From Paraphysomonas bandaiensis (Eukaryota; Protista; Chrysophyceae), in NCBI GenBank assembly GCA_965644295.1, contig CBFFRP010000127.1:186001-250000 (forward strand): DNA of 64,000 nt, read 5' to 3'. Both the position numbers and the translations under genes were made by a program. Of this stretch, positions 1,514 to 62,560 are shown one piece after another; position 1 is the first letter of the stretch, and each line of letters opens with the position of its first letter. The notes beneath the pieces were generated by a model that saw only the letters and a list, made by a program, of their open reading frames with translations, was not told the DNA's origin and did no database searches.

Positions 1514-4500
1514 ATGGAGACTGAAGACAAAGAACGTACACCTTATCTACGGGTTATAAAAGAGAGCATCGGCTTTGCAACAGAGAAGCAGGCGGGTTTG
1601 TTTGACGCCTGTGAGTTAGAGTGGGGCCACAAGTTCTTAAACACTCTACCGGAGTTAGCTCAGTGTCTTCTCGCCCGTATGATTTTACGTCAGACTGTAT
1701 GGCTGCGAACAGATCGTCTTGAGAATGCCATGCCGCGAGACATTTCTCCCTCAGAGGTTTTAAAGGAGCTCCATGATTCCCTCTCTGAGCTTCAGTCACA
1801 AGGATTCGTGGAATTCATATCAGACTCATCGCCATTTGGTGATATTTGGGAAGCAGTGAATGACACACTGCTGCTAGAAGATTTAAAACGGTTGTATGTA
1901 GACATTGTGAAATCCAGGCCGAAGGGGTAAGTATTGAACATATTTCCTGCTACGCATGTATAACTCGATAGGAGCAGTGGTCGGGACTACATTCTAGATG
2001 CTTTACACAAGACTGTGTCTACTACAAAAGATTTATTTAATCGCCCGCTTAACTTGGCTCGACACGTACGAAGGTTGCTTCAATCACCATCCTCTTCCCA
2101 GCATGTTCGTTTAGTTCGTGTGACACCTGTGGTGGTGCTTGCGTTCAGAAGATTCCAACGTGTTGTTCAGGTTTGATCAATAGTATGTCGTAATCGTCAG
2201 AATTATAGATACCTGTTTTAGATATCTTCAAGTGGAAGCGGTGTACTATCTGGGCGAGACATCATATCAGTTAGCCAGCCCCTTCGGTTCAACGCCCCGA
2301 TGCTAGTTATGTTTAACAAGGTATAACAAGATACTTTAGAGGCATTCGTAAAAGTTATCACAGATTCGATATCCGAAATATAGTATAAAAACTACGTGTC
2401 CTATATTTCCATCGAAGAAATTTTTCCGCGCTTGGGAAGGTGCAAACGAGTTAAGAGCTTGTATAAATGAAGTGAGTAGCTCTACTTCTAGCCGGTATAT
2501 TTGACATAAGTATTGAACAAGGCGACAGGAATGGTAAATCAGTACCCATGGGCTCGAGGAATTGTTCAGCGCACAGAGCAGGAGAGAGATTTACTTCCAA
2601 CTGCTGTACAGAAGAGACGTATGGACGGAATTATCGCCAGATGTATTGCTGCTGCCAGTGAGTTTGACTGCGCTGACTTTGATTCGAGTAGTACGCTAAT
2701 TAACTTAACTGAAAGTAATACCACCTTGGAGATGCAACCGTCTAGTGTAATGCGTGACTTGCTTGATCAATTTTCTAGTACCAACAATCCCCCTTCATCT
2801 CGCTCACTTGTTACCGCGATATGCCTTGGTGCTGCAGTATGTCTACTGGCTCACATCAACACTGACTGTTACACTGACTCATCTATGAGGCCTCCCTTCC
2901 TCATAGATCTAGATGGAGGTACTATCCTTTGTTCGCTGCTCTGGGATAGCATCGATGCTCTTGAGAAGGAGGCTAAGGCTGCGGTGGAATACCCACATGA
3001 CACTTTGCGTCATTTCCCACGATACGCTATACCAATTGCAGTCTTACGTGTTTTGTTATACGGCACTTCAGAATCATCCGAATCAGGCCCCGTTGCCCTG
3101 AGGTACTGTACTCGCCGGAGAGGAAAGTACTATGGCCGCATCTGCATCGACCTGGAGCATGCAGGGATGCCTCATGCAGCACTTGATGAGTGCAAACGTG
3201 GACTTCTTGACAGCGCAGTGAAGGTCCTTGTCTGTGAAATGTATAGCTAAAATTGCCTAATATGATATTGTTGTAGGGGTCATATATTGTGGGTCTTATG
3301 AAGCGGGAAACTCGCCTGAAACAGAAGTGCTCTAAATTGGGTAAACGACGCTTGGTATCACCTTTACCTGGCATAGAAGAGCTTATATCCGCTTTGAGCA
3401 ATCGTGTGGGTAGTCCAGTGTTAACTGATGAGTTATCAAGCACTACGTTTAAACAAGAGTGGCCCTGTTCTGCTTGCACGCTGCTGAATATTTATACTGC
3501 AAAGCGATGTGTTCTTTGTGGGTGTGAGAGGGCGTCATTTTCGTTTTCATCTGTATCCCACTCAGCGTCTTCCCTCACCTTGAAGCAAGAGGTGTGCGTT
3601 ATCGATGATGATTTCAAAGATGAGAATCAAAAGGTGTTGCAAGGTGGAGGAAAGCGTCGGCGTTGTGATGTATCCAGTGGTGACAGAAAGATATCACCAC
3701 CACGTGTTCTAGCCAGCTCCGTAAACTTGTCGGACGAGCAACACATAATTACCGGCAAAAGCTTACCACTATCTACCGCTAATGTAAATGTGGTGGCCTG
3801 GAGTGATGTTGAGATCGACGACAAGGCATTTGGTCTACGTTGTGAAACACATTTATATTGTCCCGATACTGTTGTAATCATTGGGCGCCGGCTTGGAGAC
3901 ATGCGCGCGGGTAAAAACCTACTAGTAGGTAAGGACGATTATACGCGTTAGTAACTGTAAGTGTTGGAGTGACACCCGTTTCGGTAGGTTTGAGTGGTGA
4001 TGCCGTTAGTGTAGAGCGGTTGGTGATGGAGACCATGCGTTCTACGTACGAGAGGGGTATATTATTTCGAGTTAATGAAGACGGTGATTTTATCCCTGCT
4101 GATGAAATGAAGAATTTTTGTGGTGGCTGGGTTGGGTGGCATGATGAAGGAGGGATATTACGCGCTTTATATACCCTGATGATGTGGAGTGAGATATTTG
4201 AGTGTGAGGTGGAGGATGTATTTCAGACTCCTTTTCAAGATTCTCCTCTTGATCTGTATGCGGATGGTGCACTCTTTTATTTGAATAGGTATGTTCCTTT
4301 TTTGTGGTCACTCTTAATCCTGATGTCGTGATAGGCGGGATTTAATAGACGAGAAGCTACAGTGGATCGAATCAGCCTCCAACGTTGATCTAATAGGCAA
4401 GTGGATGAATGCTTACAATTTTAGGGCTTACAATCTTACATTGTGATTGCTGTGTAGAGCTAATCGGAAATACATATCGCAACCAATTTCGGCGGCGATG

Positions 4501-5180
4501 TGTTGGTATATCATGGGGATCTCGCTCTCTCAGAGTACTACAACTGTGCGCTATTAGTTTGGGTGGAGTAAAACTGGCGTCATTATTCCGAGCAATGAGT
4601 GCGGACTACAAACAATTCAGCTCTGGTGCCCCTGACTTATTAATGATACGCGCAATTAGTACTCCTAGTACAGATAACGAAGAGATGGACTGGAATCTAA
4701 TCTTGGGAGAGGGATGGGATGCTACTTGCCCTACATACTACGAGGATTATGATTTGATGGACTTATCCGCAGGCGGTAATATAGCAGAGAAGTCTGAAGT
4801 TGCCGGTGAAGAGGTATGATCAGTTTATGTACTATCGCTGTTGACGGCATATATATATATAGTGTTCCGGGGGAGAAAATGACTCAGTGATAGGAGAACC
4901 TGATGAGGCACAAGCTGATTATGTGGATTCCCGCCCTGATAGATTCCTTTGTATGGATGAGGATCTTGCACTGCCTGCCCACCCGCAAGAGTCTCAAGGC
5001 AGTTCATGGAGATATGACTGTATGTTAGTTGAAGTTAAGGGTCCAACGGACAGACTGTCAGACACACAACAACGGTGGATTCACATTTTAAACTCTCTTG
5101 ACATCAAAGCGGTAGTATGTCGAGTGAGAGAAGGAAAAGTTATGGGGTCGTGTGGAGGACACCATAAAACTGTTGCATAG
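1514..5180 (+). CDS. FAN1: Fanconi-associated nuclease 1 (VRR-NUC), multi-exon
   Basis: AQCLLARMILRQTVWLR; RRRGKYYGRICIDLEH; SVERLV; GWHDEGGILRALYTLMMW; DVFQTPFQDSPLDL; nuclease motifs SGAPDL and LVEVKGPTDRLSDTQQRWI. The ORF pieces are joined by GT-AG introns. Confidence 0.9.
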
Positions 5181-5749
5181 CACAAACCTGCGATTTTGGC
5201 GTACTTATTTGAATCGGAATGCAAGAGGGGTTAGTGTCGAAGAAGCTAGAGCCAGTATATATGCCATATAATGCTTCGCTTACTCAGCAACATGATTACT
5301 GTTAGATTTGTCAAAATAGAAACCCATTATTATTTTTAATTTAATTTGATGAAGACTTTGTATAACATCGTAAAGTACGCAAGGTTTCTCTGTCACACAT
5401 ATCATCTCTACCTGTAGTCTACATCACACCATAGTCCTATGTTGGTAAGTATTCATGCACTAGTAACCAAGCGAGGACACACAACCATTATATTTCAACT
5501 ATATAGCTTCAAAGGGTCAATGTAACTGTATATGATTATGATATGCAATATGCAAACTGCTTACAACGTACAACCTATGTGTGGAGCATTAAACGTTAGT
5601 TAGAGGATTTATCGATAAAGCTCAAGTCCAGTAGAAGTACATATTTTAAATATAGGGATGAATAATGATTCATATTACTTATAAATACACTTCAACAGGA
5701 TATTAAGTGTTCATTTTCATGACAGCACAACATCGACATGAATAATCAT

Positions 5750-5965
5750 TTAGTCCGTGTGTTTCTTCTCTGCTTTCACGCTTCTTCCTCGCACTCTAGT
5801 TCTTCGCTGTCCTCCAATTCTATCTCGCATTCTTCCTAATGGTCCAATTCTCAAATAAGCCATGAGGCCAATGAACACTACTAATATAACTATTTTTCCT
5901 GTGTTTCCGACTCCAAGATAATCCAAGAAGGCAGACACCACTGACATGCTTCTCTTCCTCGCCAT
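5750..5965 (-). CDS. Small single-pass membrane protein (71 aa), unknown function
   Basis: ATG-started ORF with one hydrophobic span (IVILVVFIGLMAYL) and a basic tail, preceded by promoter-like TA/CA-rich sequence. No recognised homology. Confidence 0.45.
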   Translation of the reverse strand: MARKRSMSVVSAFLDYLGVGNTGKIVILVVFIGLMAYLRIGPLGRMRDRIGGQRRTRVRGRSVKAEKKHTD

Positions 5966-6238
5966 ACTTATATCCGGCGGTCCAATTAATTATGTATGTA
6001 GTATGTGAACACTATAATAACAGAGAACACAATGCGCTCATGATATCAGAGATACGCATACAGCAGGGCGGCACATACTCATCCTAAAACATCATACACA
6101 ACTGTAGGAGTTCATATAGACCACCATCGCAAAGCCGCACACCAATCAAAATAAATAAAACGTATCTTATTCGTTCATAAAGGAATGTACTTTTGTACTT
6201 TTGTATATGTACTACTGTATATAGGGAGTATGTAAGTA

Positions 6239-7818
6239 CAGTCAGTTCGCGTTATGGTGGACGACATATGGTGGATATCGCCGTTATAGTGGATGAATTT
6301 AGGCTTGGTACGGGGATTTTTGTATAAAATCCCCGATTTATTTACAAACCTATAGTTTTAAATAAAAATCCCTATTTTGGTGGATTGTTGTGAAAAAATT
6401 GATAGGCAATATACAGAAAAGTACAATTAATTATCATATAGTCATCTCATATACTTACATCACTGCATCTGTTCGTCTGCTGTATGTAGCGATGTCAGAT
6501 GAATGCAAAGGAAGGGTTCATTTCCTAAAGTGGAGAGAAAACTTGTTGAGTACATTAATTTTCGCCAGGAGCACTACAAAGTAGATAAATGCGGGTTGAG
6601 CTGGCAATTTCTGAAGCAGAAGGCTAAGACTATGCAAAGGTTAGCAATACTAAGAAGCAAGTATATGCTCATACTTAACATTTTTGTACTGTATAGATAA
6701 TCTATGCGGATGATGAAGAAGCGCTGAGATCTTTTCGAGCTTCATCTGGTCGGCTACGTAATGTGTTGAAGAGTCGGAAGAATTATGTTCATGTGCATCT
6801 TCACGGAGAAGCTAATGAAATCAGCGATGCTGACGCAGCGGTTGCTATAAGAGTTCAAACAGAAGTTGGGTGAATTATGTGAAATTAATGAAGTACCAAT
6901 ACAGAGAATTTTCAACGCCGATCAAACTGCGCTGTATTATGGGAAAAACCCCAACGGAATGTACTGCGAGGCAGAATTGAGTAAGACTATACGGTTTGAC
7001 AGACGTATTACTGTATGGTGGATCAATTCGGTATTTGATCCTTGGTATAAGCGCCGATATGGATCACAGAAATGTCTTATTCTGCTGGACAATTGCTCTT
7101 CTCATGTTGACATTGAGAGATCCTTATATCCTTCGTACATTACTCTAGTTTTTTCCCCGCCAAAGCTGAGACCCTATGGTCGTAGAAGCTGAAATCGAGG
7201 AAGCCAAGGAGAGCTTCGAAGCTTTTTCTATTTCTCCACTAACAGCTACGGTAGATGATGATGATGATCTAACTGAAACGAGTGTTGATACTACTACCAC
7301 TTCATCTATAGTAACTTTGAATCAATTTCATGATGCAATGCGTGTAGTATACGACTTCACCATGCAAAGTAGTTGTGAAAATGCTCCTGCTATTCACTAC
7401 AATTTCTTCAAGAACGCTTGTGAATTGACTAAATGCTACTCACAGGAGCGCACCCAATCTTCGTCACAACGAACGATACAGCATTTTTTCTCTGTCCGAA
7501 GACCTAAGTCAACACTATTACAACGTAGTTAAGAGCTCAGCGCATTCCTATCACGTAATAACAAGGCTTTTTACATAATTATTTATCTGTAGTGCGATAA
7601 TAGAAAGTTTTACAAACTAGAGTGTGGAATACGATATTTTAAACATTTACTTAGGGGTTTTCAGTAGAAAACCATGGTTTTATAAGACAAAAACTGTGTT
7701 TTGTATAAAAACCTGTTTTTTTGCAGCAAAAACCCGGGTTTTCTAATCGTGGATGGTGCCGTTGTGGTGGACAGTATGGCTTATGGTACACACCATCCAC
7801 CATAACGCGAACTGACTG
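6239..7818 (+). mobile_element. pogo/Tigger-like (Tc1/mariner superfamily) DNA transposon with a defective transposase
   Basis: Perfect 23-bp TIRs cagtcagttcgcgttatggtgga (6239-6261 and 7796-7818) flanked by TA on both sides. Transposase remnants: CENP-B-type HTH (FPKVERKLVEYI...FRASSGRL), HLHGEA, RIFNADQTALYY, CLILLDNCSSH, LVFSPP, with frameshifts and deletions. Confidence 0.92.
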
Positions 7819-7958
7819 TACACTATGTAGGTAGGTAGGTAGGTAGGTACAGCAGGTATGCATACATATGTGGGCAGGTAGGCATGATAAGATGTAGCTA
7901 TGTACGAGTGGTAAGGCTGCAGTATGTCCACAGTGCATGAGCCTTCCCACTCCCAGAA

Positions 7959-10046
7959 ATGAAGCACTCCTTAGCTAAGCAAAGCCTATACGGAGGGTCG
8001 CTGTTGTCTCTAGGTCCTCAGAACTGCAATCGCATCCTTATAGAGGGTGAGAGAGATCCTGTTATCGAGCCCGTTAAGTCAACCCTCTCATCATCAGAGG
8101 GATGGGGAGGGACCCATCTTTTCACTGGGATTATTGAAGATGTCTGCAGGTGTTTTGAAGAGAGATATGGCACGGTAGTTTGTAGTTGTGATGGTTGCTG
8201 TGTGGGGTCACTGCTGTTCTTCTAGGGGGCCTCTGCGCTTATGGGGTACGCTACTTTGCTGCTGGATTGTCTGACTGGATTGGAGAGAACCCCCGAAGCA
8301 TTACATACTGCATTGCAACTACTACAAGAAACTTTTGCTGAGTGCTGTGAGTGTCTGGCTCTTGTGCATAATTTGCCCAAGTTAATTCCGGAATCAACGC
8401 CAGTGGTGACGGCAGTGAATGACGTCGAGGATGTGGATGATGTGTCGTGGTTTTTTGACGTACCAGTACTAACGGAGTTGCTGCCTTCGCCTGATTTAGA
8501 AACCGATGATTCTCGTTCCGAGTCTGTTTGCTTTACTAGGTGGAATATATTGCGTGGTCTTCAGCACACCCTTCCCTGGGAATACGACCAATCGCCACCA
8601 CACTACGCTGAACATGATATTTCACTTCCAATGGCACTAGCAGACTTGGCTTGGAATAGCTTGAATATTTCTTCATTCCCCATTCCATTGCAAAATTCTG
8701 TCCGACCAGCGGAACCCGAAGAGATGGCAGCAGCGATACAGGATATACACGACCGTGTAGCTGTGCACATGATACAGGGGTCCCGGACCTCCTCCTCATC
8801 AGTTTACTCGGATGCATTGGTTCTCTTCTGTGATAAGCCAAGGGCGGGGAGTGCGACGATAGGGGTAAGAGTGTATGAGAGCTGCGTGCGTGCTCAAAGG
8901 GCTAGGGGAGTTGAAGGAATAACAAGAGTTGCACTGGTCGATCAACCTGTATGTGTAGACGATCGAAGTGCTGCAGGATTACGAATGGACGGTAGCGGTG
9001 CATCTCAACAAGCAGATGACATTCAGAATCGAACAACCTACACTGTGCCATTTTCTGACAATGAAAATAGATCGGCTTCGTACATAGAGAAATGTGTATC
9101 TTGTCTTCAAAAGCTGGAGGTACATTTGCTGTTGTGTCCACATCCGCTATCCTTGAAACTAGTCGATGCGTGCTTCGAACACAACATATGTGTACTTCCT
9201 GCGAGTCCAGCAGAGATTCACTCCATGGGACGGATGGTGGGGGCGGATGTGGTGGAAGACGTTCTCGACCTGGATAATGATGCGCTCGGTAGAGGTTACC
9301 GTGTATCGCTGACTCTTCGAGATGATGTGCGGAGGGTAGATGAAGATGTGGAGCAGGGGAGGCTTACACTGAAGGAGAGTGTAATGGTGGTGCTACACCC
9401 GAAGCCCAAAGAGAAATTGTTTGAAATACGTAATGATGGTTATGCGAATAGCTGTAGAGGTGGAAGGAAATGCTCTTGTGTTGCGGTGATCATTTCTTGT
9501 CCCTCTACAGCAATAGGATTGGCTATTAAGGACAGGGTCATGCGCTGCTTGCATCGACTTTGTCTGGCCACGAACAGGGGAGCACTAATGCCTGGAGCAG
9601 GGACTGCAGAGATGTTGTGTTCTGCAGTCTTAGAAGAAAGACAGGGACATTTGAATATTGGAAAAAATTACGCAGAAGTTGCCTTATGTCTGAACAATAT
9701 TCAACAAGCACTTGAGAACTTCGCCTATATAGTGAGTGTCAATGCTGGATTGTCTCCCCAGGATAGCATGAGTAATTGGTATAGTAGTCGAAAGTCTATT
9801 GTAGCTTTGAAATGTGGGACGAAAGGTGACTTGCTAACACAAGTGCGGCGACTGACACCATCTGAGAAGTGTAAATTACTTGCCCCGATAAGATTGCACC
9901 CTGAGTGCACGTATGAAGAATGTGGAGTACTAGATGTCGTTGTAGTTAGGATAAAAGCGATGCAGGCAGCAGTGTATGCAGTGAAGTCAGCATTAGATGC
10001 AGAAACAATGGTCTTCAATAGACGTACTTCCAGCCAATTTTTATGA
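7959..10046 (+). CDS. BBS12: Divergent CCT/TCP-1-like chaperonin, most like BBS12
   Basis: SLGPQ start motif; splicing out intron 8175-8225 gives FEERYGTGASALMG (degenerate GDGTT motif, as in BBS12); C-terminal RCLHRL...LMPGAGTAEMLC and VLDVVVVRIKAMQAA. Confidence 0.65.
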
Positions 10047-10327: not shown

Positions 10328-10761
10328 CAGGGCTGCGTAACAATTAATTGTAATTGCTACCCACCCCATGATGACTGATTTCCAAAAATCGCAAAAAGAA
10401 TTATACTGCGACCCATGACCCATGACCAACTCGACGGTAATAATCTGGATCGATAATTGGCAAATTATTAACTGTATAGTATAAGCACATTATATTAGAA
10501 TTAGAAGTTGGAAAACATTAACTTTCAGTAGAGAAAAAGTTAACATGAGTGATGAGATGAACTATGGCACATCATCGATTAGAGGCCCTTTTGTTCTTGC
10601 GCTTTAATAGATTTCTGTGGAATACAAGTACTGTTGAAGATGTTATACATGCTTGTAATGAGTAACTAAGTTCATTAGACAATAATTGGCACAATTAAAT
10701 TGCAATTATAACTGCGCGAGCTATAGAACTAATAATTTCAATTAATTGTTACGCAGCCCTG
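10328..10761. mobile_element. Non-autonomous hAT element (MITE) with a retroelement inserted at its right end
   Basis: 23-bp TIRs cagggctgcgtaacaattaattg (10328-10350 and 10739-10761). The 8-bp TSD ggctatac lies at 10320-10327 and, displaced by the insertion, at 11782-11789. Confidence 0.88.
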
Positions 10762-10762
10762 G

Positions 10763-11772
10763 TGGTGCCTTACTTCTGCACAAACTAGCCCTCGTTGGCC
10801 ACGGCAGATCCAAGATGAAGGACAGTTCACAACTAGGACAACACATACTCAATACAGCCCTGACACGGGACAAATCCTACAGAAATGGTAGGAATAAGGC
10901 CAAAATAAAGCTTGGACTTGATCTAAACAAAGCCAGATGTGTTGATTGTGGCTTTCGGCTTGACTCTCTAAAACATATGTATCTGGATTGTCCTCACGAC
11001 GCCATCTCTCAGATACGAGAAACCGCCTTTTAGAGACCCAAGGATTGTCTGCGGACACTCCTAATTGATCCAACTCTCCCAACTTGGAGCTCCGCCATTC
11101 TCAAGAAACTCTCCCGCAGAGCCTGGAGTACCTCCCTTCCGCAGGTTGAACGATTCTGGACAGGAACAATTACCGAAGCTGAAATGGAAAGCGTTTTCGG
11201 AATACAGTACCAATGCTCCCTCAATGCGCGTGGCCTACATACCATTGAAACATCAGTTGTTAAACCGCAGCCAAACAAATGCTCCAAGATCGTAGTGGGC
11301 CACAAAGACTCCCCCCCTAGACCGCGCGACGACAAATCCGTCAGCTACTCCTCTGTCCAAGACCCAATTCGCAGCTAAAGCCATTCCAAGCCATGCAGGA
11401 GTCCCAACACCCCCCCTCGTCCATGTATCTCAGTTCAAGAATACTTGACTCACTGATTCCGAATCCTCCTCCACAGAGTCCCGAGGAGCCCTATTCTAAG
11501 GGGCATCCTCCTGACTGAACCTTCTGTACCTCAAGGACTGACGTCCGCAGAGAGCTTCTCCCTCACACACAAGAACGGAAGTGGTTGCACCTTGGTGCTT
11601 ACGGCGACGCACAAGCAGCTTCTGTAGCGATAAATAGTAGGATATGAGAATTTATACTAGTTAGTTACGACTGGTAGAGGTCAATCCAGCTTGACTAGTC
11701 TTCATCTAACTACTTATCTGGTGTCGATTCTCGACGCCTACTGCTAATAATAAGACTTTCACAATTGTATTT
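10763..11772 (+). mobile_element. 5'-truncated non-LTR retrotransposon, copy A
   Basis: 10-bp TSD gcagccctgg (10753-10762 and 11773-11782); ORF remnant with a CX2CX8HX4C knuckle (CVDCGFRLDSLKHMYLDC) and PQVERFWTGTI, ending PYSKGHPPD*; ~200-nt 3' tail shared with five other loci. Confidence 0.85.
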
Positions 11773-12918
11773 GCAGCCCTGGGCTATACTAATCATACGC
11801 ACTGATGATGTGGCTTTTTTAATCACTAAAAATCCCACACACCGGTCATTTTGCTTTTTCTCAATAGATGCGGTGCTCTTCCTTGTATGTCCCAAAACTC
11901 TTATGATTAAAGCATTGAATACTATATATATATGAAGCCATATTTTCTGTGGATACACGAACTGGCTGCTAAACCACATTCTCCCTACCCCAGTGATCCT
12001 TTATATAAACAGCACAGTTCTTCATTCGTAAATTATTCTGACATAGAACTCAACCAGACTTGGCGCAAGGGCTCTTCAACTTTCGTTTGATTAAGATGGT
12101 AAAGCGTAATGTACAGCATGTATACGTCAGGGCTGGGGAACTTCATATTTCCTCCTACTACATATTTTTGACGAGTGAATTCTGGAAATGCTTTGTCGTT
12201 GTTGAACTAATTATGTTTGTGTGTTTCCGAACATTTGAGAATAACATGAGCCGTGTATATGTTTATTGTAGCGTATTCTTGTAATGCACGGATATCTATG
12301 ATTTTATGAACATGGAAGTACACACAAGAATAGAACAGCATCGCAACTGAAGTGACATATGAGATGCTCATACTCACCCACTGTCTTATAGTATAGACGA
12401 TCGGGAGTGAGAAGACCTGAACTATGGCACCTACAAGAAAGACTGGCTTTTCATTGCTACTCATCACCCATCATACACTTTTACGTCCGTAGATTGAATT
12501 CGAGGACTTTAATGCCAGTCGAACCACGAAACCATGAATTTTGGACAATATAGTTTTAAAAAACGGCTATTTTGGAAGAAAAGTCGTGTAATATGAAAAA
12601 CCCTGACTATTGTATATGGCTAAGAACTCGAAGTTCTTCAAGATATACGGAAAGTTCGAATGGCATAAAGAACCATAAGGAAGAAATGAGTGTTTTCTAT
12701 TGGTTCGTTCAATTTGTACGTACTCCGGTACTGTGAGTGTATATGCATGTATCAGTGTATGGTATGAGTGTCTGTGTATGTAAAGGATTGTTCTTCTCCT
12801 TCTTCTTTAGTTCTCTGTTACACTCATAGAGAGTAAGACTTGTGCGCAGTGGCTCAAAGCATTCTTTCTTATCTTAAAACCCAGAAACAGTATAAAATTC
12901 TAAAATAACATAAAAAAC

Positions 12919-14900: not shown

Positions 14901-15059
14901 ATAGTTTTGTGAAATTAGTTGTTGCTATCAATAAGGTACGGATGTCTTAATGCATTAATTTAGAGCTTTTGTCAACAATTGACACTATCGATTGAATACG
15001 GTAGAAGTGACAACCATTCTGTACTGTGTGTCTTCCCTATTGTTGGCGGAAATATACAT

Positions 15060-15285
15060 CCCTCCTAAATTTATCAGAGGTTCCTATTAAACTAAAAAGT
15101 GCCATTTGTTCCTGCTATGCTTTGCCGACGTTCCTATTAAATTTAAAAGGCAGCTGAGTCTAAGTTTAAAAATGGCATTCCTACTAAGCTTAAAAATTTT
15201 ATCGATTCTACTAAATTTCAATTTGGCTCAACTGCCACTTTTAGTTTAGTAGGAACAACGGAAAGGGTTTAAAAAATGACACCAT
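15060..15285. repeat. Palindromic MITE-like family B, copy 1
   Basis: Shares ccct(a/c)ctaaattta...aaaaagtgccatttgt...gacgttcc...ggctcaactgc...tttagtaggaacaa with 53311-53550 and 55178-55438; contains internal inverted repeats. Confidence 0.8.
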
Positions 15286-17439: not shown

Positions 17440-17798
17440 ACGAACTTATTTCAGTTTAACCTATAGTGCGCTTTGCCTTACTTTAATATAGCCGTTGTGA
17501 AGAGAATATATTGTCAGTAATATTTAATATTTACATCATTAAACATATATATGATATTATATTGGTATTAACTCACGGTAATCTAGCTACACTACTTCTA
17601 ATGGACACAACACCTTCACTCTCTACACTCCCTCACTTAAAGCAAAATTTGGTCTCACTATATATTGCAACGTATTGATATATACTGTGCATGCTTGTGT
17701 ATCTTTGAAAATATATTTTTATTATCATAAATTACTCTTCATAATCACAGAGCTCAGCTATTATTATAATATCGAACGATTTTGATAATTACCTGGAA

Positions 17799-18135
17799 TG
17801 TTAGAATTGGACATTTCATTGAAGTTAACTTTGCTTTACACGTAAACTTTGACCTTGCTCTGTTGAACACAAAGCACATTCAAGTAAGAAATTATAATTA
17901 CTATTCTGAACACTTCACTACATATTCGTGTAACATCTGATGAAACATCTGTTCTCAGCGACGTCTGTTTATCATATGTTCATCAGTCAGTTCTATACTA
18001 GTATAGTGACACATCAGTGTAACTAAATTTAATTCCTTTGTACCTATAATCACCCGTTACACCTATGAGTTGACTTCACCTATTGCACACTATTAACGCA
18101 CTTCAATTGCACAATATATATCACATCATATTGCA
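17799..18135 (-). mobile_element. Solo, internally shorter Copia LTR
   Basis: Reverse-complement match to the LTR at 33273-33970, lacking about 335 bp of its interior and about 10 bp of its 5' end. Confidence 0.85.
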
Positions 18136-18219
18136 ACGCTATTCCTGTTCATATGAAGTGAAGCATCCGGGCTGTCACCTTAAGGACTCAAAAATATTGA
18201 ACCATCTGCTTGAGTGATA

Positions 18220-18310
18220 GAGCTAAAGTGGTTACATCTTGATGCTTGCGGTGACGCACAAGCAGCTTTCGTAGCGCGAAATAGTTAAGTTAAGTACTGC
18301 CTAGTCAGTT
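18220..18310 (+). repeat. Fragment of the non-LTR family 3' tail, copy F (diverged)
   Basis: aaagtggttacatcttgatgcttgcggtgacgcacaagcagctttcgtagcg aligns to 11578-11629. Confidence 0.8.
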
Positions 18311-23543: not shown

Positions 23544-24668
23544 CTAATTCGATGACGAGCAATACTCATGAATTTGCAGTTGTTTGAAACTGGAGTCAGA
23601 AAACGCATGAACTTTTGCACCTTTGTTAATGGTCGTAATGCTTCGTGTGTGCGGAGTCACCATTGCTGTATCAAGACTAGGTACTTCACTTTGGGCTGCG
23701 GGATACAGTTCGCTGTTACACAGTTCGCGTATAGTCATCTTCGCTGTGCGGAGATCGGATCGCAAAATGTAAAACTGCCGTCTTGAATGGGAAAGGATGA
23801 GCATAATCATCATCCAATTGAATATTAGCGCCCCAACAATTACAGGTGTCATTGCAGAGCCCAGATGTAACTCTGTTCCAGTTAAACTATGGTCACTCTC
23901 ATCTGTGTCATAACAATAGGTGGCCGCACTCATTCCTGTGTAATGCATACCAAATATCGCAATTGCCATCACTACGGCGCTCACCATGCGAATTTTTTCA
24001 TTTTGTGGGTACAAAGCTAACATACGGAACATTATCCAAAAGGCTGCAGTTGCCGCCACACAGGCAATCAAAACAGAGGCAGCGATTATTCCATAGTTCC
24101 ATTGAATAGTCATGGGGCCAAACATTGCTACCATGCCGACATAGTGCATAATGCAAACACCCCCACCAGCAATTAGACCTCCGATCATGATATAGGATGT
24201 CCCATGGAACATGACCACACGGAGCACGGCCCATTTGCTACGTATTTTACCAACTGTCAAATGGGAGCAAGACTTGATTAATTCCTCAAACAACTCATGA
24301 CGCTCTTTGGTGTACAGCTTGTCCAGAGTGGCTACATATGCCCCAACATATACAAAAGATACACTGCATACAAGTGATATAATAGTCAGTATCAAATCAT
24401 AATGCGGATGAATTATCCTATCAGAGGGTGCTATCAAGTTCATAGCTCCCATTCCTATGAAATGCATGCACCACACCGCATCCCCCCCAATAGAAAACGC
24501 TATCAGCAATAGATGATAAAACTGTAGCCACGCATGACTTTGTGTAAATGCTGATACTCTGAAGTGTTCCACCAGAGAGACAGCGACATAAGAGCCCAAA
24601 AACGCTACCCCAAACGACACTAGTATATAGTCAGTGCTCCATTCTACTCTGATTTCATCGCAAGCCAT
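23544..24668 (-). CDS. MHYT-domain multi-pass membrane sensor, stand-alone
   Basis: Three MHYT repeats (WCMHFIGMGA, CIMHYVGMVA, FGMHYTGMSA) with alternating TM helices. First in-frame ATG at 24668; an upstream exon is possible. Confidence 0.88.
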   Translation of the reverse strand: MACDEIRVEWSTDYILVSFGVAFLGSYVAVSLVEHFRVSAFTQSHAWLQFYHLLLIAFSIGGDAVWCMHFIGMGAMNLIAPSDRIIHPHYDLILTIISLVCSVSFVYVGAYVATLDKLYTKERHELFEELIKSCSHLTVGKIRSKWAVLRVVMFHGTSYIMIGGLIAGGGVCIMHYVGMVAMFGPMTIQWNYGIIAASVLIACVAATAAFWIMFRMLALYPQNEKIRMVSAVVMAIAIFGMHYTGMSAATYCYDTDESDHSLTGTELHLGSAMTPVIVGALIFNWMMIMLILSHSRRQFYILRSDLRTAKMTIRELCNSELYPAAQSEVPSLDTAMVTPHTRSITTINKGAKVHAFSDSSFKQLQIHEYCSSSN

Positions 24669-25901
24669 TCCCTCCCCGGCGCTCACATACACTGCTGTCT
24701 ATGATAAGGATGGGATGATGCCTTTAAGAGTGATCTGATATGCTTCTATTGATCAGAATATGATGGTATGAACTTAACCGTTTAGCCCGTACAGGTATAC
24801 CGTGTATACATACCCATCATACCACAAGTGTATGAGGGAAGTCCACGATGACGATACCTCCGCCACATATCCTAAATATCGACCCACATACGTACATACT
24901 CCATACTACTGGAATTTCTATAAGATTTTCTAGCCCATCTGGCTATTGTATTCTACTGTACTTCCGTATTACGACACTATCTCCAGCAGTTTCACGTGTG
25001 GACATCATCTGTATATACAGCAGTATACAGCAGTATACTGGTCTATATACGACTACAGCGTTGGATCGTACGTCAGAACGGTATCATTACATCTAGAGAG
25101 TGCCTTTAATGTTGGTCTATGGTATAGGATGGCAGTATGGGAATAAACTGCATGCATATCATGATTGACTGATATAGGAATTCGCCTCAGGAAGAATAAC
25201 GATACTAAGGAATCAAGGTTCATATGTCCGATGCTTCTACCAATTACACTTTATAGTATATTTGGGTGAAACTGTACATACAGGCCTAATAACTCTACTT
25301 ACATCATATATAAGTAGCACTTTTATTGTTTGTGTGGTTGGAACTGTTAGTCACCATAAATTGGCCTCGTTGAAGTAATACTTGTTTAAATCAAATCATG
25401 AATTTAGTTATCAAATTAATAAATATATGTCCCATGTAGCATACCTGAGGCTGACCACTCAGCAAGAGAAGGGTATAAAATTCTTATCAACTAAAGACCA
25501 CCTTCCTGGTACATTTGTTAAATCTTGTTTATCTATTACTGTTCTTTTGAAAGGCAGGAAAATTTCACTTCACAATAAAACGATCTTTAAAGAATCAAGG
25601 TGAATCTCTAGAACACTGCGACATTGATCGACAAGGTTTTAAACTAAACATTTGCGTGACAATATAATTAAGCCATCTCTACGAGGTTGATATATGATGA
25701 GCTTTGATTATTGACAAGAAATGAAAAGATGTAGTTTGAACTCTAAAATACTTTAAGAAATAACAGTACTTCATAAACGTCTAAAATTATAAGAAACTGC
25801 CCCATTCCGAGAGCGTGGCACACCACATATAACACCAAGATTACGCTCAGACTCTGTTGCCGTCCCACCCGTGATTTATCACAGCTACGCATGACTTATA
25901 T

Positions 25902-27117: not shown

Positions 27118-27305
27118 CACTACATCCTAGCTATCTATGCTCTGTTCCCTAATGCATAGTAGTTTACTTTGATGAAGGCTTGTGAGAGAGATAATAGCTT
27201 GATGTAGCACATGTGAACCACGTCATTAATTACACTACTTATAATATAACACATAACGAAACATTAATTCGTAAAGCAGTGACAGTTAATTGGAAGGTTA
27301 TATGC

Positions 27306-28667: not shown

Positions 28668-29113
28668 GTTGTTGTTGTTGTTTGTGGGTAAGTTAACTCG
28701 CAAATGTTTGACTTTGTCGAAGTAACGAAATTATGAATCACTGCACACTTCAAATCCTCTCATGCTCATGCCATTTGAAACCGACATATCTTGAAGGGTC
28801 ATGATATCTTGAAGAGACACAGTATCTTGAATGGGTAATGTGTTTTAGTTTTTTTTTCATCTTTTTCTGGTTGCTTTTTCCTTCTATTTCCTTGAAGTTC
28901 GGTTGGTGTATGTATGTGGCTGTGGATATACAGTATGTCGTCATTCGTTAGGGAAGTATGACTGTAGTGTGTAGTGGTGGATGTGTGTATACGTATACAG
29001 ATATCGACGGTCGGTGCAGTTCAAAAGATTCGATTATATCAACTGGAAACACATACATTCATTAGAACCCCGTATATATATCTGCGATGTATATGCATCT
29101 ACGCTGATGTATA

Positions 29114-30109: not shown

Positions 30110-30974
30110 TAAATTTTATCACTACAGTAGACATGTGTTTTTATGTGTGTATTTCGCCAGTAGAATTTTTATAAATCGATTTCTGAACAATTTTCTGATT
30201 GGAACGATTTTGATTTAAATCCCTCAAAATTACAATATAACTATGTTTTTTTATTTGTCGTCTTGAAAATAAGGCTAAGGTTATAGTCAATTACATTTAT
30301 TGAAAACATTGTTCCTGTCACAAAGCTATAGATATTACCGCTCTACTCCTGTAATGCCGCGCTACACACGGTATAATTGTATTATCAGTATTAAAGCAAA
30401 GAAGCGTGCTGTCATTAAAAATAATAAAATTGAGCTTTATTTCTATCTGTGCATGATGAATGATATATATAATATACACACCACGGTATCGCTGTCGACA
30501 TTTAGTCAAGATGTGTGTTTCGTATTTCGCACCTCAACTTACTAGTTACCTGGCATTTTACCACTTAAAGGCATTGTGATTTACATTGTGACCTTTAATA
30601 GCGCACTGACTTTCGTTTATCTATATGCTCAGAAGTAATATATTTTTCAATTGTAGACTATAAAAGTATAAAAGTAAGGATTTTTCCTAAATCCTGTTTC
30701 GGATCGAGAATTGACGAAACCTTTGCTGTTCGATGAAAATATATACCCATGCCGTGCTTTTCATCCATGAAACTCATACTCTAAAGTAATACCAGAGAAT
30801 CTTGCTTGGTGCTGGCAAACTTTTGATAATAAGTTAAGTATATAATCTCATTGCAGTGAAGAATTACCGTGTGGCCTTATTGTTATTTATACATAATAGA
30901 CTTATTCAAGTATTTATATAAAATTTGTATCGCCAACAGTTAGGTCAATGATGCGGTATAGTTACAAACACTAT

Positions 30975-31104
30975 GTGAAAGTCTTGTTATTAGCAATAGG
31001 CGTCAAGAATCATCACCATATAAGTAGCTAGTAGATGTAAACTAATAGTCAAGCTGGATGAACTTCTACCTGTAACTAACTAGTGCAAATTCTCATATCC
31101 TATT
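30975..31104 (-). repeat. Extreme 3' end of the non-LTR family, copy E
   Basis: Reverse complement matches 11634-11763 (taggatatgagaattt...ccagcttgacta...gacgcctattgctaataacaagactttcac). Confidence 0.85.
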
Positions 31105-31699
31105 ATAAAATTTTAATTATAATGTTGTGACACTACGAAAAAGCTGAAACAAGCACTATATCCACCTTGATAGTGTGCCTCCTTATTGTCCCTTTTCTTC
31201 TCTCCACTACTGGACTCTACTTCATTCTCAAACGTAGCCACTCTTCATCATATATATAGTACTATCTATATACGTGAAAAAGTAACATCATAAATATGCA
31301 TTATTAAATTTTGGTATATGGCGACATTTTATCTTTTTAACCTCTCAGAGATACAAATTACAGTAAAGTAATCATTCAGTACTTTTAGATACAAAACAAG
31401 GTTTTGGTATATTACCCCGACGACTTCAAAGCAATCCATCATATAACCAGCACAGTTCATCCATTGTTGGTGCAGAAAGATTGCCAGCTACTCTTGTCTC
31501 ATACATATATACTTATATGAATAATGCCCTACAGTGTTAAGCAAGCATACATATATAATATATTTATATAATATACTGTTTATAATAATATATATATACA
31601 TATATAGAACATTGCATACATAAAATTACAATACACATAAAACCTTACAAAAAGAGGTCTTACGATGGTGCTTATTCCACCAAAATACGAGTGAATGTC

Positions 31700-33272: not shown

Positions 33273-33970
33273 TGTTGAGTTCTGCAATATGATGTGATAT
33301 ATTATATTGTGCAATATAGGTGAAGTCAACTCGTAGGTGACGGGTGATTATATAGGTACAAAGGAATTAAATTCAGTTACTGATGTATGTGTGACTATAT
33401 ACAAGATATAGAACTGACTGATGAACATATTATAATATATATGATAAACAGATGTTGCTGAGAACAGATGTTTCATCAGATGTTACACGAATATGTAGTG
33501 AAGTTTTGACTATTGACCATTTGAGACAATGAAGATCGTGTAATAAGAGAAGTTAAAGTTGATCAAAACTAGATAGATTACGTTATCATAATTGTAGTAT
33601 ACACAATTGTGTTGTCAAGTAAAACTCATCAACAACATGATAATATAATTTCTTCATGTCATTTACTGATCAACTTCCGTATCTTGTACAGTTGTGGTAC
33701 AATACTTCAGTTTCACAGTTATCGCTATATAGTATGTTTGGCTACGTATTACTGTTTCTCACATTGTATTCACCGTATTCTATAGAACTATCTTAGAGAG
33801 ACATAGATATTCCAACGCTAACGTGCGTATTCCAACATGATGTGTTCAGAATAATAATCATAATTTCTTACTTGAAAGTGCATTGTGTTCAACATAGCAA
33901 GGTGAAGGTTTACGTGTAGAGTGTAGAGCAAAGAGCAAAGTTAACTTCAGTGAAATGTCCAATTCTAACA
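33273..33970 (+). mobile_element. Copia 3' LTR
   Basis: Starts tgttga right after the PPT and ends ctaaca (TG...CA); second copy at 17799-18135. Confidence 0.85.
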
Positions 33971-41798: not shown

Positions 41799-43486
41799 GA
41801 GGCTTACGTAACAATTAATTGGCAATTAGTTGGTGACAGATGTCCAACAATAATAATATCAACTATCACTCAAGCATCTAATTATTGCCAATTAATTGCT
41901 AGATTATAGAATAACTTTTTGAACTATAATCTTATCCCAAAGATTATTTTCACGCAGAAACATCAACATTTCAAGGTGTCTAGGTGCCATTCGCCTGCGA
42001 AAATCAGTCAAAACTATCTTATCTCTGCTAAGCAACCTCTCACAAACATTGGTATTGCTATACAAATGCTTTATGTCAACGATATGGTGTTAAACCAGTG
42101 ATACACGTTCCAGCCATAAGGCGACACCTTTCGCTGGACATAACCATTTAAAGGACCACTTCCAGTTAATGCAGCTTGCCACCCTGTTACATAAATCCAT
42201 GTACCTGTCTACCTGTACTGTTGGACACATCACCAGCTCTCTCTCTCTGTCCAACACACTCATAACACCACTGCAGTGTCATACACACACACAGTACACT
42301 CTACCTCCTCCTAAAAAACCCCCAGACAAACTATCTCCTCTCCCTTCGTCCCTGATACCTTGCCGTCATCTTCCTTACACACACTCTCTATGCCTCAGTC
42401 TGTACCCCCCTGCACCAACACAGACACTAACAAGGGCAGCTGAGGACGTCCGAGTGTCTCCTCCAGACCATCATCATCATCACGATCATCTCGTGCATAG
42501 GTCTATCAGAGTACTCGACCTCAGTGACTCTTGTTCTGTTGCGCAGTCTCACTCTCCTCAATCAGATGTTGCCTCTCTTGCACCATCACGCTCCCTCTCG
42601 ACTCCCTGTAGCTGGACACATCGGATGACCCTCACATCCCACCCCTGTACAGCTATACACCCTCTTGCATGTGTTCTCTACCGCTGGCTAAAAGACAGCA
42701 AAAGAGCCGATTTCGACGCTTCTTCACAGTAGGCCATAACCTTTTGCAAGACCTTCATCCACATACCTCCGAGCCACTTGGAACAATGCCTAAAGGAAGG
42801 CCACCAGATTACTGTTTCCCCTAACTGCCATAAGGCTAATAAGTCAGTCCCCGTGAGGTACATAAGGCTATCTATCATATAGCGAGTGGAGTCTCATCCC
42901 AAGAGGAGACCTCCAGATCACACGCGCCGGTGAGTCCCAGGACACACGATCATGGCGAGCCTCATAACACACACTAAGAACGGAAGTGGTTGCACCTTGG
43001 TGCTTGCGGCGACGCACAAGCAGCTTCTGTAGCGTTAAATAGTAGGATAAAAGAGTTTGTATTGATTAGTTACGGGTAGTAGTCTAACTAGTATGACTAG
43101 CATTCTTCTAGCCACTAATTGGTGCAGGCTTTCAACGCCTATTGCTAAATAATCAGACATTCAATATAATAATGATAAGAATGGCTATTAAATGATTCTA
43201 GTCCATTATTGTTGTACACATACTCTACGGTTCCTCTGATAGTGGTACTTAACGGATAACCTTTTAAAACGTCGTTTACACTACTATACTTGAATATTTT
43301 GAAGCAGTTGACTAGCTGTATCTACACGATCGTTGTGAAGGTGCTATATATAATTTTTAGCCAGCCTATTAATTAGCAACGTTTACCGATAATAATTAGT
43401 GAAATTATCACTTTTAAAACCAAAATTAATTTAATTGGCAATTATTGCCAATAAATTGATAACTAATTAATTGTTACACAAGCCTG
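41799..43486. mobile_element. Older hAT MITE (related to 10328-10761) carrying non-LTR copy B
   Basis: Imperfect TIRs gaggcttacgtaacaattaatt / aattaattgttacacaagcctg; subterminal aattggcaatt repeats; candidate TSD matches at only 5 of 8 positions. Confidence 0.65.
42100..43170 (+). mobile_element. 5'-truncated non-LTR retrotransposon, copy B (5' boundary approximate)
   Basis: Low-complexity C-rich ORF region ending SHPKRRPPDHTRR*, followed by the conserved tail at 42976-43163. Confidence 0.75.
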
Positions 43487-48580: not shown

Positions 48581-49374
48581 TCTTGATGAAGCATAAAAAC
48601 AAAAAGCTTGAATTCTGTGGTTTTCTACATTATTATAAACTACGATATATATTATGTACGTTAAATTGCATGTTATTTCCCTTGGAAAATAAAGCTATTA
48701 TTATTACATAATTTTTTCTAATAATATTTGGCTCAACGTTTTCTGGACACTGCCGAGGTCAGCAAAAGCGCTCGAATCAGTACCTGTGTGTTCAACTACC
48801 GTAGTAGCTTACTTTAAATAACACCCGATCGTCCATGTCGTCTGGAGACGTGGCTATATTCCTTCGACTCAACTGCATGTTGTGGGATGCTACTACTTTT
48901 CACGAAGTCTTGGAAGAATATGTGCCAGTGGAGAGCAAGAAGAATGATGATATGTAGTCTGTTATTTATTTAACCTACCCTCTATTATGAGCGATATTAT
49001 CTATATAGTATAATAATAATATATATGTAAAAAGTCATTAGTGGTAATTACGACCATTATAATTGCCGGGGTAGAGTGTATGTTAATGACCATTATATAA
49101 TTGTAGGGAACTGGGAGGCGAGACCAAGGCTAGCATAATATCCTGAGAAGGATGCTTCGCTTCTCCTGGTACATCGTACTATCCTGTTTTCTACAAAGCT
49201 GAATTATAAGAAAAAGGATATAATTTTCAAATCAACTACCAAAGTTACCAATTGAATCAATATCAATGCATCTGGCTAATCATACATAGTAGACATAATA
49301 ATAGTAAAAGCTCTGATGTCATCCATTATTCTTTTCCGTAATGCTAGCCCATATGTCATCAATCAGTCTTATGC

Positions 49375-49863
49375 ATATATAAATGTCTGTTTATTAGCAA
49401 TAGGCGTTTGAGAGTCAGTCCCAGCTTTTTGAAGTTAGATGACCGAATTATAGTCAAAGCTACTAAATAAGTATCTACCATAAACCAACCAGTATAACTC
49501 TAGTATATCCTACTATTTAACGCTTCAAGAGTTGCTTGTGCGTCACCACAAGCACCAAGGTGCCACCACTTCCACTCGTGAATGTGTATTATGGAGAGTT
49601 AGCCGATGATATAAGTCCTACGGGGTCAATGCTTGTTTAGTCAGGGGGATGCCCTTTGGGGTAGGGCTCCGCAGGATTGGGAGGGGGTACATGATTCTGT
49701 ATCAGGGTGGTGAGCGTACCGAGCGTGAGAGACATGAGTTGAGGCATAGGACGTAGGAATAGGTTCTGGATCATCATCAGGAAACTCAATACGCAATTGG
49801 AGCGCAGAAATAGCTGGCGGAGACGCCGGCGCCACGGTTTGGTGATGTGGGGGTGAGGTGTTG
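49375..49863 (-). mobile_element. 5'-truncated non-LTR retrotransposon, copy C
   Basis: ORF end PYPKGHPPD* followed by the conserved tail; candidate 6-bp TSD ttatgc (49369-49374 and 49864-49869). Confidence 0.8.
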
Positions 49864-60929: not shown

Positions 60930-61580
60930 AGACGTGTAAGAGTCAGAACTAATGTAGCAAAACAATTTAACTCAGTAGTGCCTACTGAAGTCAAGCATAC
61001 TGAAATAGTAGAATATCACACACATACAAGCGGAAAGGGCAGCCGGGCGCTTCTTGTGCCGCATATTAGGCATCCCACTTGCGCCGGGAAGGCGCTCCGT
61101 ATCGTAATAAAACTCTTTCTTTTCACTCTAAGTTTCCATCCTTTTCACTATAATATTATCTATAATAATATTAATAATATACACCACTGCCCTCCAAGAC
61201 GTACTGACTGCTCATATTCATGTCCGGGTCTGAACTATCTCACCACACTTGTAGTTATAAAATCTTGAGCATCGTCACACTTGAGCACCAATTCCTTCAC
61301 TCGGCCGCTACTTCAGGATTGTCGACTTTGTACATCACGTGTGCAATGGAAGGGTCTCTAATAAATATGTTAAACGAGAAACCATATAAGCGCAGGAGCA
61401 AAATTACCTTCAGGTAATTTTAGGAGGGGATTAAAGGGAGGTTCTACATGTTGAGGGTGTGAATCACTTTCGCACAGCTGCGGGATTAGACAACATATAC
61501 TCTTTCCGTCTTCATGAGGCTAGAATTGTCGTGCCCGCACTACTATATTCCTGGATAGCCAAATATAGTGCTCAGGATAT
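60930..61580 (+). mobile_element. Second decayed Copia relic
   Basis: 60933-60972 matches 31708-31744 (cgtgtaagagtcaga.ctaatgtagcaaaa), and 61545-61580 (tattcctggatag...agtgctcaggatat) matches the Copia RNase H region at about 32798-32830. Confidence 0.55.
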
Positions 61581-62560
61581 ATATTGAAAGTCTTTTTATT
61601 TATCAATAGGCGTTGAGAACTCGTTCCAATATAGTGGCTAGTTGAATGCTAGACATACTAGTTAGACCTCTACCCATAACTAATCAGCACAAATTCTATT
61701 ATCCTACTAGTTAGCGCTACAGAAGCTGCTTGTGCAACCACTTCCGTTCTTGAAGTTGTTTTTGAGTTTCGCCCTGCTCGTGTGTCTGAGGACTCACTGG
61801 CGCGTATTGTGCGGGGGTCTCCCCTTGGGATAAGGTTCCGCCTGGCTCGGAGGTACAGGGTTCTGTATTAAGGTCCTGAGTGTACCGAGCACTAGATGTG
61901 TGTGCTGAGAGGTTGATGGTGTGGTGGAATGTGGCGGTGTCTCCGTGCACCGTCTGGGCGTCAGGCATAGGTGGAGTTGCCGGAGACGGCGTCGCCGCTG
62001 TCTAGGGCCTGATGGTTTCATACGGTCCGGTGCTATGGTCCTTGGCGTATGATTGGTGGGGTTCATATGTGCGGTGGGCGGTGATCCAGTCTCGGTTCGT
62101 AGTAATCTTAGCACCCTTGGGCGTTTCCATTTCTGTCTATTATGTTTTGGACGCGGTCGCGGTAGTAGCCTAGGGGGTCCTTTCTGTAGGGTAACGTATC
62201 GTCTACTTCGATCTAGGATCATTAGCTTTGCTGCAGCGAAAAGCGGTAGAAGCAATTTGATGACCGCTGATTCGATGCTGCGCAGTCCTTGGGGTGTCGG
62301 TGACACATGGATGTGATCTCCAAAAACCGTCTCGAGTTGTGCAGTTGTGATATATGGTACCCGTCCAAAATCTCTCCACCTGTGGAACGGAGGGATTCCA
62401 GGCCCTGCTGGAGAGCCGCTGTAGTACAGTGGTGATCGATTGGGGTAGTACCGGATTTCTCAGTTCTTCTTGAAGCGCATTTTAATGGCTGTGAAATGCA
62501 GACTCCCTTATCTGCGTTATGGCGTCATTTGTACAGTCTAGACACATGTGCTTGAGTACT
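61581..62560 (-). mobile_element. 5'-truncated non-LTR retrotransposon, copy D
   Basis: LKHMCLDCTNDAITQIRE and RAWNPSVPQVERFWTGT match copy A at the protein level; ends PYPKGRPP...*; conserved tail with a 22-nt deletion. Confidence 0.85.

Follow-up and report, generated by a model that had tools for sequence, protein, structure and literature searches.

A three-part structured 3′ tail carried by APE+RT LINE lineages, several of them SET-bearing, and by a SINE-like partner element in Paraphysomonas bandaiensis

A repeat of ~200 nucleotides (nt) recurs in a 64,000-nt stretch of Paraphysomonas bandaiensis DNA (contig CBFFRP010000127.1, positions 186,001 to 250,000; hereafter the window, whose own numbering is used for all coordinates given without a locus name). 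This repeat is the complete 3′ untranslated region (UTR) of a clade of long interspersed nuclear elements (LINEs) that encode an apurinic/apyrimidinic endonuclease (APE) and a reverse transcriptase (RT), and several lineages of the clade also bear a SET domain. The tail, as we call this UTR, consists of a Y-shaped junction, a rod-like domain and an unpaired terminal motif, and it is an undescribed and distinctive three-part form of a known kind of signal, found over a wide range of lineages. We observed the repeat anatomy, hallmarks of target-primed reverse transcription (TPRT), covariation, an architecture maintained across lineages, and sharing of the tail with a non-autonomous element. Recognition by the RT and priming of reverse transcription is probably the main selected function of the tail, in which case the RT would bind the folded RNA and prime at the terminal motif. 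A full-text literature search found no paper describing this tail element, which is weak evidence of absence.

The copy that served as reference (copy A) contains the following features.

10744..10761, no strand: 5′ target-site duplication of copy A, AATTGTTACGCAGCCCTG, from flank comparison
10762..11762, plus strand: copy A, a 5′-truncated LINE copy of the sub1 lineage with a C-terminal remnant of the open reading frame (ORF) and a complete 3′ UTR, from BLAST
11574..11631, plus strand: domain I, the Y-shaped junction, from model match and pair counts
11574-11577 with 11628-11631, plus strand: helix P1a
11578-11581 with 11619-11622, plus strand: helix P1b
11582-11586 with 11614-11618, plus strand: probable helix P1c
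11587..11598, plus strand: hairpin P2, GCAC-CUUG-GUGC, an exact match
11600..11611, plus strand: hairpin P3, UACG-GCGA-CGCA, from alignment A1
11635..11743, plus strand: domain II, rod-like, closed by UAGUAGG (11635-11641) with CCUACUG (11737-11743), from RNAalifold and A3 pair counts
11744..11762, plus strand: unpaired 3′-terminal motif CUAAUAAUAAGACUUUCAC, the end of the element, from motif comparison and folds
11763..11781, no strand: 3′ target-site duplication of copy A, AATTGTATTTGCAGCCCTG, from flank comparison

The target-site duplication around copy A is ~18 bp long. Copy A matches the genomic locus L036 at 82-83% in BLAST, and also L060, L063, and L064. Compared with L060, its identity is 66% in the ORF part, 80-86% in the tail and ~97-100% in the core, which is in line with an earlier annotation of the window, made from its sequence (the first-pass annotation), that described the tail as better kept than the coding DNA.

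The same annotation counted six copies of the family, a number that proved far too small: there are hundreds to thousands of copies, belonging to several LINE lineages. A first look at the 62.5-Mb assembly gave 2,260 tail candidates (identity 82-100% in 40 of 40 scored), and at least 150 genome-wide core matches reach 92-97 bits with a core covariance model. Thirty genomic tail copies read with 1.5-kb flanks (L001-L030) have one sharp common 3′ end and stay similar upstream over lengths that differ from copy to copy, a pattern typical of 5′-truncated non-LTR copies, that is, of retroelements lacking long terminal repeats. As had been reported before, there is no poly(A) at the end of the tail; elements finish in a constant ...AGAC(N)UUCA, after which come short runs of (AU)n or (AC)n. 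Directly upstream of the tail in one copy (C186), a 373-residue ORF matches the C-terminal ends of over 180 long open frames. Of the full elements, two were read: one has two ORFs of 938 and 1,849 residues (L060:30-2846 and 3308-8857) and the other a single ORF of 2,788 residues (L061:339-8705, minus strand). Exo_endo_phos, RVT_1 and SET domains lie across the large ORFs of both elements and are clear in L061; the SET match in ORF2 of L060 is a sub-threshold C-terminal fragment, and the ~685-residue region following the RT has no Pfam match. The core starts ~40 nt past the stop codon of the APE+RT ORFs in L060, L061, and L062. The tail is therefore the 3′ UTR of APE+RT elements, and its assignment to the 3′ end of non-LTR retroelements was correct. 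Among PDB structures, human L1 ORF2p (E 4e-8) is a closer match to the RT than R2 is (E 7e-4). The ESM-Atlas clusters nearest to the element protein come from eukaryotes and are most often labelled Bacillariophyta. We also observed that the giant autonomous LINEs place the SET domain, which is histone-methyltransferase-like, ahead of the APE and RT domains.

Domain I was examined in alignment A1, which holds 41 distinct cores and in which most counted changes stem from few events. An outer stem enclosing two hairpins is 89% paired in A1, versus 26-51% when the partners are slid. P1b has changes on both sides at all 4 of its pairs and occurs as GAAG/CUUC, AAAG/CUUU, GGGA/UCCC, GGAA/UUCC, and AGGA/UUCU. 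P3 is closed by G-C in the main families but by A-U in distant ones, and a further outer segment, AACG/CGUU, located across a 5-nt bulge, has A-U, G-U or G-C at one pair. Across lineages, P2 occurs as GCAC/GUGC, GCGC/GUGC, GCCC/GGGC, CGCC/GGCG, and CGGC/GCCG. Copy A itself has a G-to-A change in P3 that breaks one pair. RNAalifold on a gappy 39-sequence alignment gave nothing usable. The outer stem with its two hairpins, which the first-pass annotation had drawn, is thus real and covaries, as judged from pair counts, cross-lineage strands and shuffles. The same cannot be said of the CUUG and GNRA tetraloops, which had been put forward as a conserved feature. Loop 1 is CUUG, CAAG, CAUG, AUAU, UUUG, ACCU or a 7-nt loop, and loop 2 is GCGA, GUGA, GCAA, GACC, CCCC or UCAC, depending on the lineage. 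Since the loops are not kept across lineages, CUUG and GNRA are local features of the main families of this genome. A pseudoknot between loop 1 and a CAAG sequence was considered and rejected, as loop 1 becomes CAAG or CAUG while the supposed partner stays CAAG.

The proposed three-way junction holds as a Y-shaped junction, but its supposed single strands, UGGUU and AGCAG, are most likely base-paired as a continuation of the outer stem. These two strands probably pair as U-A, U-G, G-C, G-A, and U-G. Single changes in several copies turn U-G into C-G or U-A, and G-C into G-U; a metagenomic relative carries CUCUU/AAGAG in their place; and when cores are excised and folded, the minimum-energy structures include the pairs. 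The three-way junction is compact, one of its stem segments is nearly invariant and has G-A and G-U oppositions in the families of this genome, and the 3′ end is precise and lacks poly(A). These features might suggest a catalytic or host-mimicking RNA, such as a self-cleaving ribozyme or a mimic of tRNA or of the signal recognition particle (SRP) RNA, which host factors would process or bind so as to define the 3′ end. We regard this as extremely unlikely. Hammerhead, HDV, twister, SRP, and tRNA families have no Rfam match at E up to 10, ARAGORN detects no tRNA, and the element ends ~130 nt downstream of the junction. In relatives the "invariant" segment is swapped for Watson-Crick pairs, namely CUCUU/AAGAG or, in the metagenomic locus L080, an 8-bp perfect stem; there is therefore no conserved catalytic core. 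The nucleotides adjacent to the junction also vary in relatives, and no Rfam model of the hammerhead or of an HDV-like ribozyme matches. More generally, an Rfam scan of the whole window at gathering thresholds gave no match, including to the UnaL2 (RF00436) and R2 (RF00524) families. With E up to 10, the sole match in 11400-11850 is to sR38 on the opposite strand, at 20.6 bits against a gathering threshold of 50, which is at chance level, and nothing relevant was found on three SINE-like loci. The tail thus matches no known family, as had been stated from the first pass, and the absence of a hammerhead or HDV was likewise upheld.

A BLAST search with 11401-11800 against the window itself located the tail at 42968-43163 (plus), 30965-31106 (minus), 61585-61735 (minus), 49483-49705 (minus), and 18226-18285 (plus), with E from 8e-14 to 5e-48, and self-comparison of the window shows the same family. 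The 64-nt core covariance model matches 11569-11632 (87.9 bits), 42974-43037 (94.9 bits), 18216-18279, and 49518-49581 (minus), as well as a deleted core remnant at 61712-61753 (minus); the E values, with the remnant included, range from 2.5e-9 to 1.4e-25. The window copies other than copy A are as follows.

18216..18293, plus strand: copy F, an old fragment with the core alone left, AAAG/CUUU in P1b and CAU/AUG in P2, from alignment and model
30974..31106, minus strand: copy C, the final ~133 nt of the tail, 5′-truncated within the UTR and without the core, from BLAST
42887..43168, plus strand: copy D, a 280-bp 5′-truncated LINE copy with a complete tail and its core at 42974-43037, from BLAST and model
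49362..49724, minus strand: copy E, a diverged old copy with its core at 49518-49581, a GUGA loop and one U-G, from alignment and model
61576..62557, minus strand: copy B, a ~980-bp 5′-truncated copy of the sub2 LINE, 86% identical to L060, with both core hairpins deleted

All six places named in the first-pass annotation were found again, although copy C lacks the core and the core of copy B is a deleted remnant. The double changes that it had read in copy F (AAAG/CTTT and cat-CTTG-atg) are seen at 18216-18279, and the GTGA second loops are present at 18216 and 49518 (minus), the latter with a single U-G in its second hairpin. Copy D belongs to a lineage whose C-terminal protein is ~60% identical to that of sub1; its DNA is 90-91% identical to L063 and L064, and its full UTR folds into the three-part architecture.

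Across LINE lineages, the tail is kept better than the neighbouring coding sequence. Lineages with 60-65% identity in the C-terminal protein have tails of 80-93% nt identity, and at 41-42% protein identity only a ~37-nt core (84-88%) and the terminal motif are kept. Decayed genomic copies gather breaks and deletions in the core, and window copies B, C, E, and F are decayed, deleted or truncated. The constraint is therefore exerted on elements that are active, not on DNA already inserted. More distant relatives were sought in marine and other metagenome assemblies by a word-indexed protein search with the part of L060 from the RT to the C-terminus. This search found LINE proteins of 27-36% identity, as well as one relative of 70% whose contig stops before the UTR. 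The metagenomic relatives have the same topology in different letters, starting 4-20 nt past the stop codon.

L080: outer stem GGUCCUCU/AGAGGACC; hairpins CGCC[ACCU]GGCG and GCA[CCCC]UGC
L083: outer stem GGACAA/UUGUCC, then UGC/GCA; hairpins GCGC[7 nt]GUGC and GCGU[UCAC]ACGC
L077/L078: outer stem GGGACUCUU/AAGAGUUCU; hairpins GCCC[UUUG]GGGC and GCA[GACC]UGC
L081: outer stem CUAGG-UGU/ACA-CCUAG; hairpin CGGC[CUUG]GCCG and a weak third helix

Nine lineages were compared with the structure as a guide; pairing of each strand with its own partner is 93%, 97% and 89% for P1, P2 and P3, versus 59%, 60% and 44% when the strand of another lineage is used. The covariance model R1, run on the contigs of the relatives (30 kb), has its sole match at E below 1 in L077/L078 (10.8 bits, E 0.7), starting 4 nt after the stop codon; L080, L081, and L083 are unmatched by R1, which is too sequence-specific. 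A first DNA pattern scan of the metagenomes gave 0 matches. A looser scan gave more than 120, of which 80 loci were screened with model R1; none of the 80 matched at E up to 1, and these hits were set aside as chance. Three still more distant LINE relatives (P0008, P0011, and P0017) were uninformative, since either the contig stops too soon or the ORF continues. We note two further observations on the relatives. A SET-bearing ORF lies upstream in a metagenomic relative of 36% identity (L077:1-2727), and downstream of the LINE end in L078 there is an A9 run followed by a CAGCA/CAGCAC-rich simple repeat (L078:4675-4796). The L078 lineage may differ from the others by ending in a short run of A.

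The first-pass annotation, which folded the core of the ~200-nt tail, missed the rod domain and the invariant terminal motif. In alignment A3, which contains tails from the main families and in which most counted changes again stem from few events, the closing helix of the rod is 95% paired, and an inner long helix has changes on both sides at 7 of 11 pairs. The ~18-nt terminal motif, U-AAU(A/C)AU-(C/A)AGA followed by (C/U)NUUCA, varies little or not at all among the 11 lineages compared, four of which are metagenomic LINEs. It is unpaired in every fold and is the most widely conserved part of the tail. When the UTRs of the 11 lineages were folded singly, each gave a Y junction, a closed second domain of 50-130 nt and an unpaired 3′ end. 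In a scripted test of this three-part architecture on minimum-energy folds, 11 of 11 native UTRs passed, compared with 1 of 3,300 dinucleotide shuffles.

These results also bear on whether lineages resemble one another because of recent recombination or tail swapping together with shared descent, with covariation as a by-product and no selection on RNA structure. Retroelement copies are related by descent, the A1 and A3 counts come mostly from few events, and kin sequences can beat shuffles without any structure, which is a stated caveat of the pair-count method. However, the metagenomic LINEs, at 27-36% protein identity, have helix sequences that are non-alignable while topology and place are the same, the architecture separates native UTRs from shuffles, and P1b exists in at least five complementary versions. 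We therefore consider this explanation very unlikely.

Three tails had a common upstream sequence that is not LINE-like. When one of these regions (L043:560-1110) was searched in the genome, at least 40 copies with 90-94% identity were found, which begin at query base 58-61 and all finish at the tail end. They define a discrete non-autonomous element of ~493 bp (L043:617-1110), resembling a short interspersed nuclear element (SINE), with the tail as its 3′ half; fragments of it are present in more than 20 of the genomic loci read. Three copies have perfect or near-perfect target-site duplications of 10-12 bp and finish in ...GACUUUCA, then (AU)2-6. The ~300-nt head has no similarity to the LINE proteins. 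ARAGORN finds no tRNA in the SINE-like loci, and L043, L038, and L018 match no Rfam family at E up to 1, so no head derived from a Pol III small RNA (tRNA, 5S, 7SL) was detected. One frame, starting at the first base of the element and running through the core, has no stop for ~130 codons (L043:617-1012) and no similarity to LINE proteins; this open frame is probably due to chance.

The first-pass annotation had suggested an RT-recognition signal of the "stringent" type, in which an RT recognizes its own RNA. This reading fits our results and is strengthened by the SINE-like partner, because that element carries the same tail; binding by the RT itself is something we infer. In the mechanism that we propose, the folded domains of the tail would be recognized by the RT of the element. 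The closing helix of the rod would bring the terminal motif beside the Y junction, an arrangement that may suit a single protein platform. TPRT would then start on the terminal motif, without need for poly(A), and slippage would yield the short repeats. The SINE-like element may be copied in trans by the LINE machinery, since it carries the same handle.

An alternative is that the tail is mainly a module for 3′-end formation or stability, in which the AAUAAU motif directs cleavage or termination and the folds block exonucleases, with no specific role for the RT. Within the invariant motif, AAUAAU or AAUAAA lies 8-12 nt ahead of the element end, poly(A) is absent from the copies, and the tail is present in poly(A)-selected marine metatranscriptome contigs. 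As the main explanation we find this rather unlikely. A pure stability or processing role leaves unexplained why a non-autonomous element with an unrelated head needs exactly this tail to reach high copy numbers with TPRT-type duplications, and polyadenylation combined with priming at the motif predicts A-tailed copies, whereas (AU)n or (AC)n is found. We note that the two roles are not exclusive.

Transcript assemblies and the position of copies relative to genes were also inspected. The 3′ part of the LINE appears in marine metatranscriptome contigs from poly(A)-selected and total cDNA alike. Contig depth is 50-100 times higher over the core than over the ORF, a figure from assembled contigs in which DNA carry-over is possible and strand and true level are not readable. 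Many of these contigs, with differing upstream sequences, join at the first base of the core, and no poly(A) was seen after the element end in the contigs, from which RNA ends are not readable. Around L001-L030, with the tail oriented forward, 14 downstream open frames of at least 230 residues run opposite to the tail and 1 runs in its direction, and upstream open frames are mostly on the same strand as the tail. This strand bias indicates that copies lie mainly between convergent genes, in 3′-to-3′ intergenic regions. Such placement probably reflects purifying selection against insertions near promoters, and it fits a role at gene ends as well. Given the convergent siting of thousands of copies, the AAUAAU motif and the abundance in contigs, the tail could act as a gene-end module in addition to its role in copying the element, much like SIDER2 in Leishmania. 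That the tail is a dispersed terminator, polyadenylation or 3′-UTR regulatory module at the ends of host genes is nevertheless unlikely in our judgement.

Several points weigh against the tail being a folded signal selected for RT recognition. Copy A folded alone adopts another long-range structure that has no Y (z = -2.0), and RNAalifold on A3 gives different inner pairs for the invariant core, with no covariation either way. The cross-lineage alignment of helices was made by hand and guided by structure, and the covariation reflects a modest number of independent evolutionary events, from about 6-7 lineages. For the shuffle test, the start points were deliberately set at the base of the outer stem, and an unbiased test for the Y shape in 90-nt windows after stop codons had a background of 5-9%, with a detector too strict on bulges. 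Finally, the AAUAAU of the terminal motif resembles a polyadenylation signal, so 3′-end formation could explain part of its conservation.

Structured LINE tails common to SINEs are already known from eel UnaL2 and insect R2, and the tail described here adds no new principle. According to Kajikawa and Okada in 2002, the 3′ tail of the eel UnaL2 (L2 clade) is reportedly common to UnaSINE1 and required for recognition by the LINE RT, which is the stringent mode. The tail resembles UnaL2/UnaSINE1 in being a structured 3′ tail common to a LINE and a SINE and in ending in short terminal repeats and not in poly(A). However, UnaL2 has one short stem-loop with a specific loop and repeats of the (UGUAA)n type in a vertebrate host, whereas the tail here combines a Y junction, a 50-130-nt rod and the invariant UAAUAAUCAGA terminal motif in a protist host. 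The R2 RT, studied by Luan and Eickbush, is said to bind the 3′ UTR and to prime TPRT at the exact 3′ end, independently of poly(A). The R2 3′ UTR (RF00524) is likewise a multi-helix structure of ~200-250 nt whose fold is kept more than its sequence between lineages, but R2 has a restriction-like endonuclease and is site-specific for 28S rDNA, while the elements here have an APE, are dispersed and make 10-18-bp duplications. RTE-type pairs such as Bov-B/Bov-tA share with our elements the APE+RT combination, the lack of poly(A), a short 3′ UTR with a simple-repeat end, and tail-sharing SINEs. Compared with RTE-type LINEs, the elements here are giant (ORFs of up to 2,788 residues) and SET-bearing, and the likeness is one of anatomy. 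What SIDERs share with ingi/L1Tc is the 5′ signature, and they are extinct relics that were exapted to regulate mRNA. Like SIDER and RIME of trypanosomatids, the elements described here include thousands of short LINE-derived copies in intergenic or 3′-UTR positions of a compact, intron-poor genome. In contrast to SIDER, the common part here is the 3′ tail, and intact autonomous partners exist. For diatoms, one study names RTE-like LINEs, in Thalassiosira pseudonana, as its only non-LTR elements, and no structured tail is described there (PMC2806351).

The rest of the window is intron-poor eukaryotic DNA with genes for TCP-1, a poly(A)-binding protein and two copies of tubulin. A 1,683-bp segment that contains the tubulin gene (465 residues, minus strand) is duplicated with 99% identity at 27119-28801 and 50430-52112, 23 kb apart. 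At 23544-24692 (minus strand), a 382-residue ORF in this eukaryotic setting carries three repeats of MHYT, a sensor domain of bacterial type. Other short dispersed repeats, unrelated to the tail, lie at 15059-15258, 53297-53531 and 55162-55390, and self-comparison of the window reveals another such repeat at 17798-18114 with 33280-33971 and 44721-45023.

The tail provides an RNA handle that can be tested, both for the clade of giant SET-domain LINEs and for its SINE-like passenger, in a setting where non-LTR elements are barely described, namely marine diatom-type genomes. The three-part signature can be converted into a covariance model for annotating the 3′ ends of LINEs and SINEs in diatom genomes and metatranscriptomes, and the tail is useful to define lineages with a common mobilization system. 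As a small recognition pair of RNA and protein, the tail and its RT would lend themselves to the study, or the borrowing, of target-primed reverse transcription that does not depend on poly(A).

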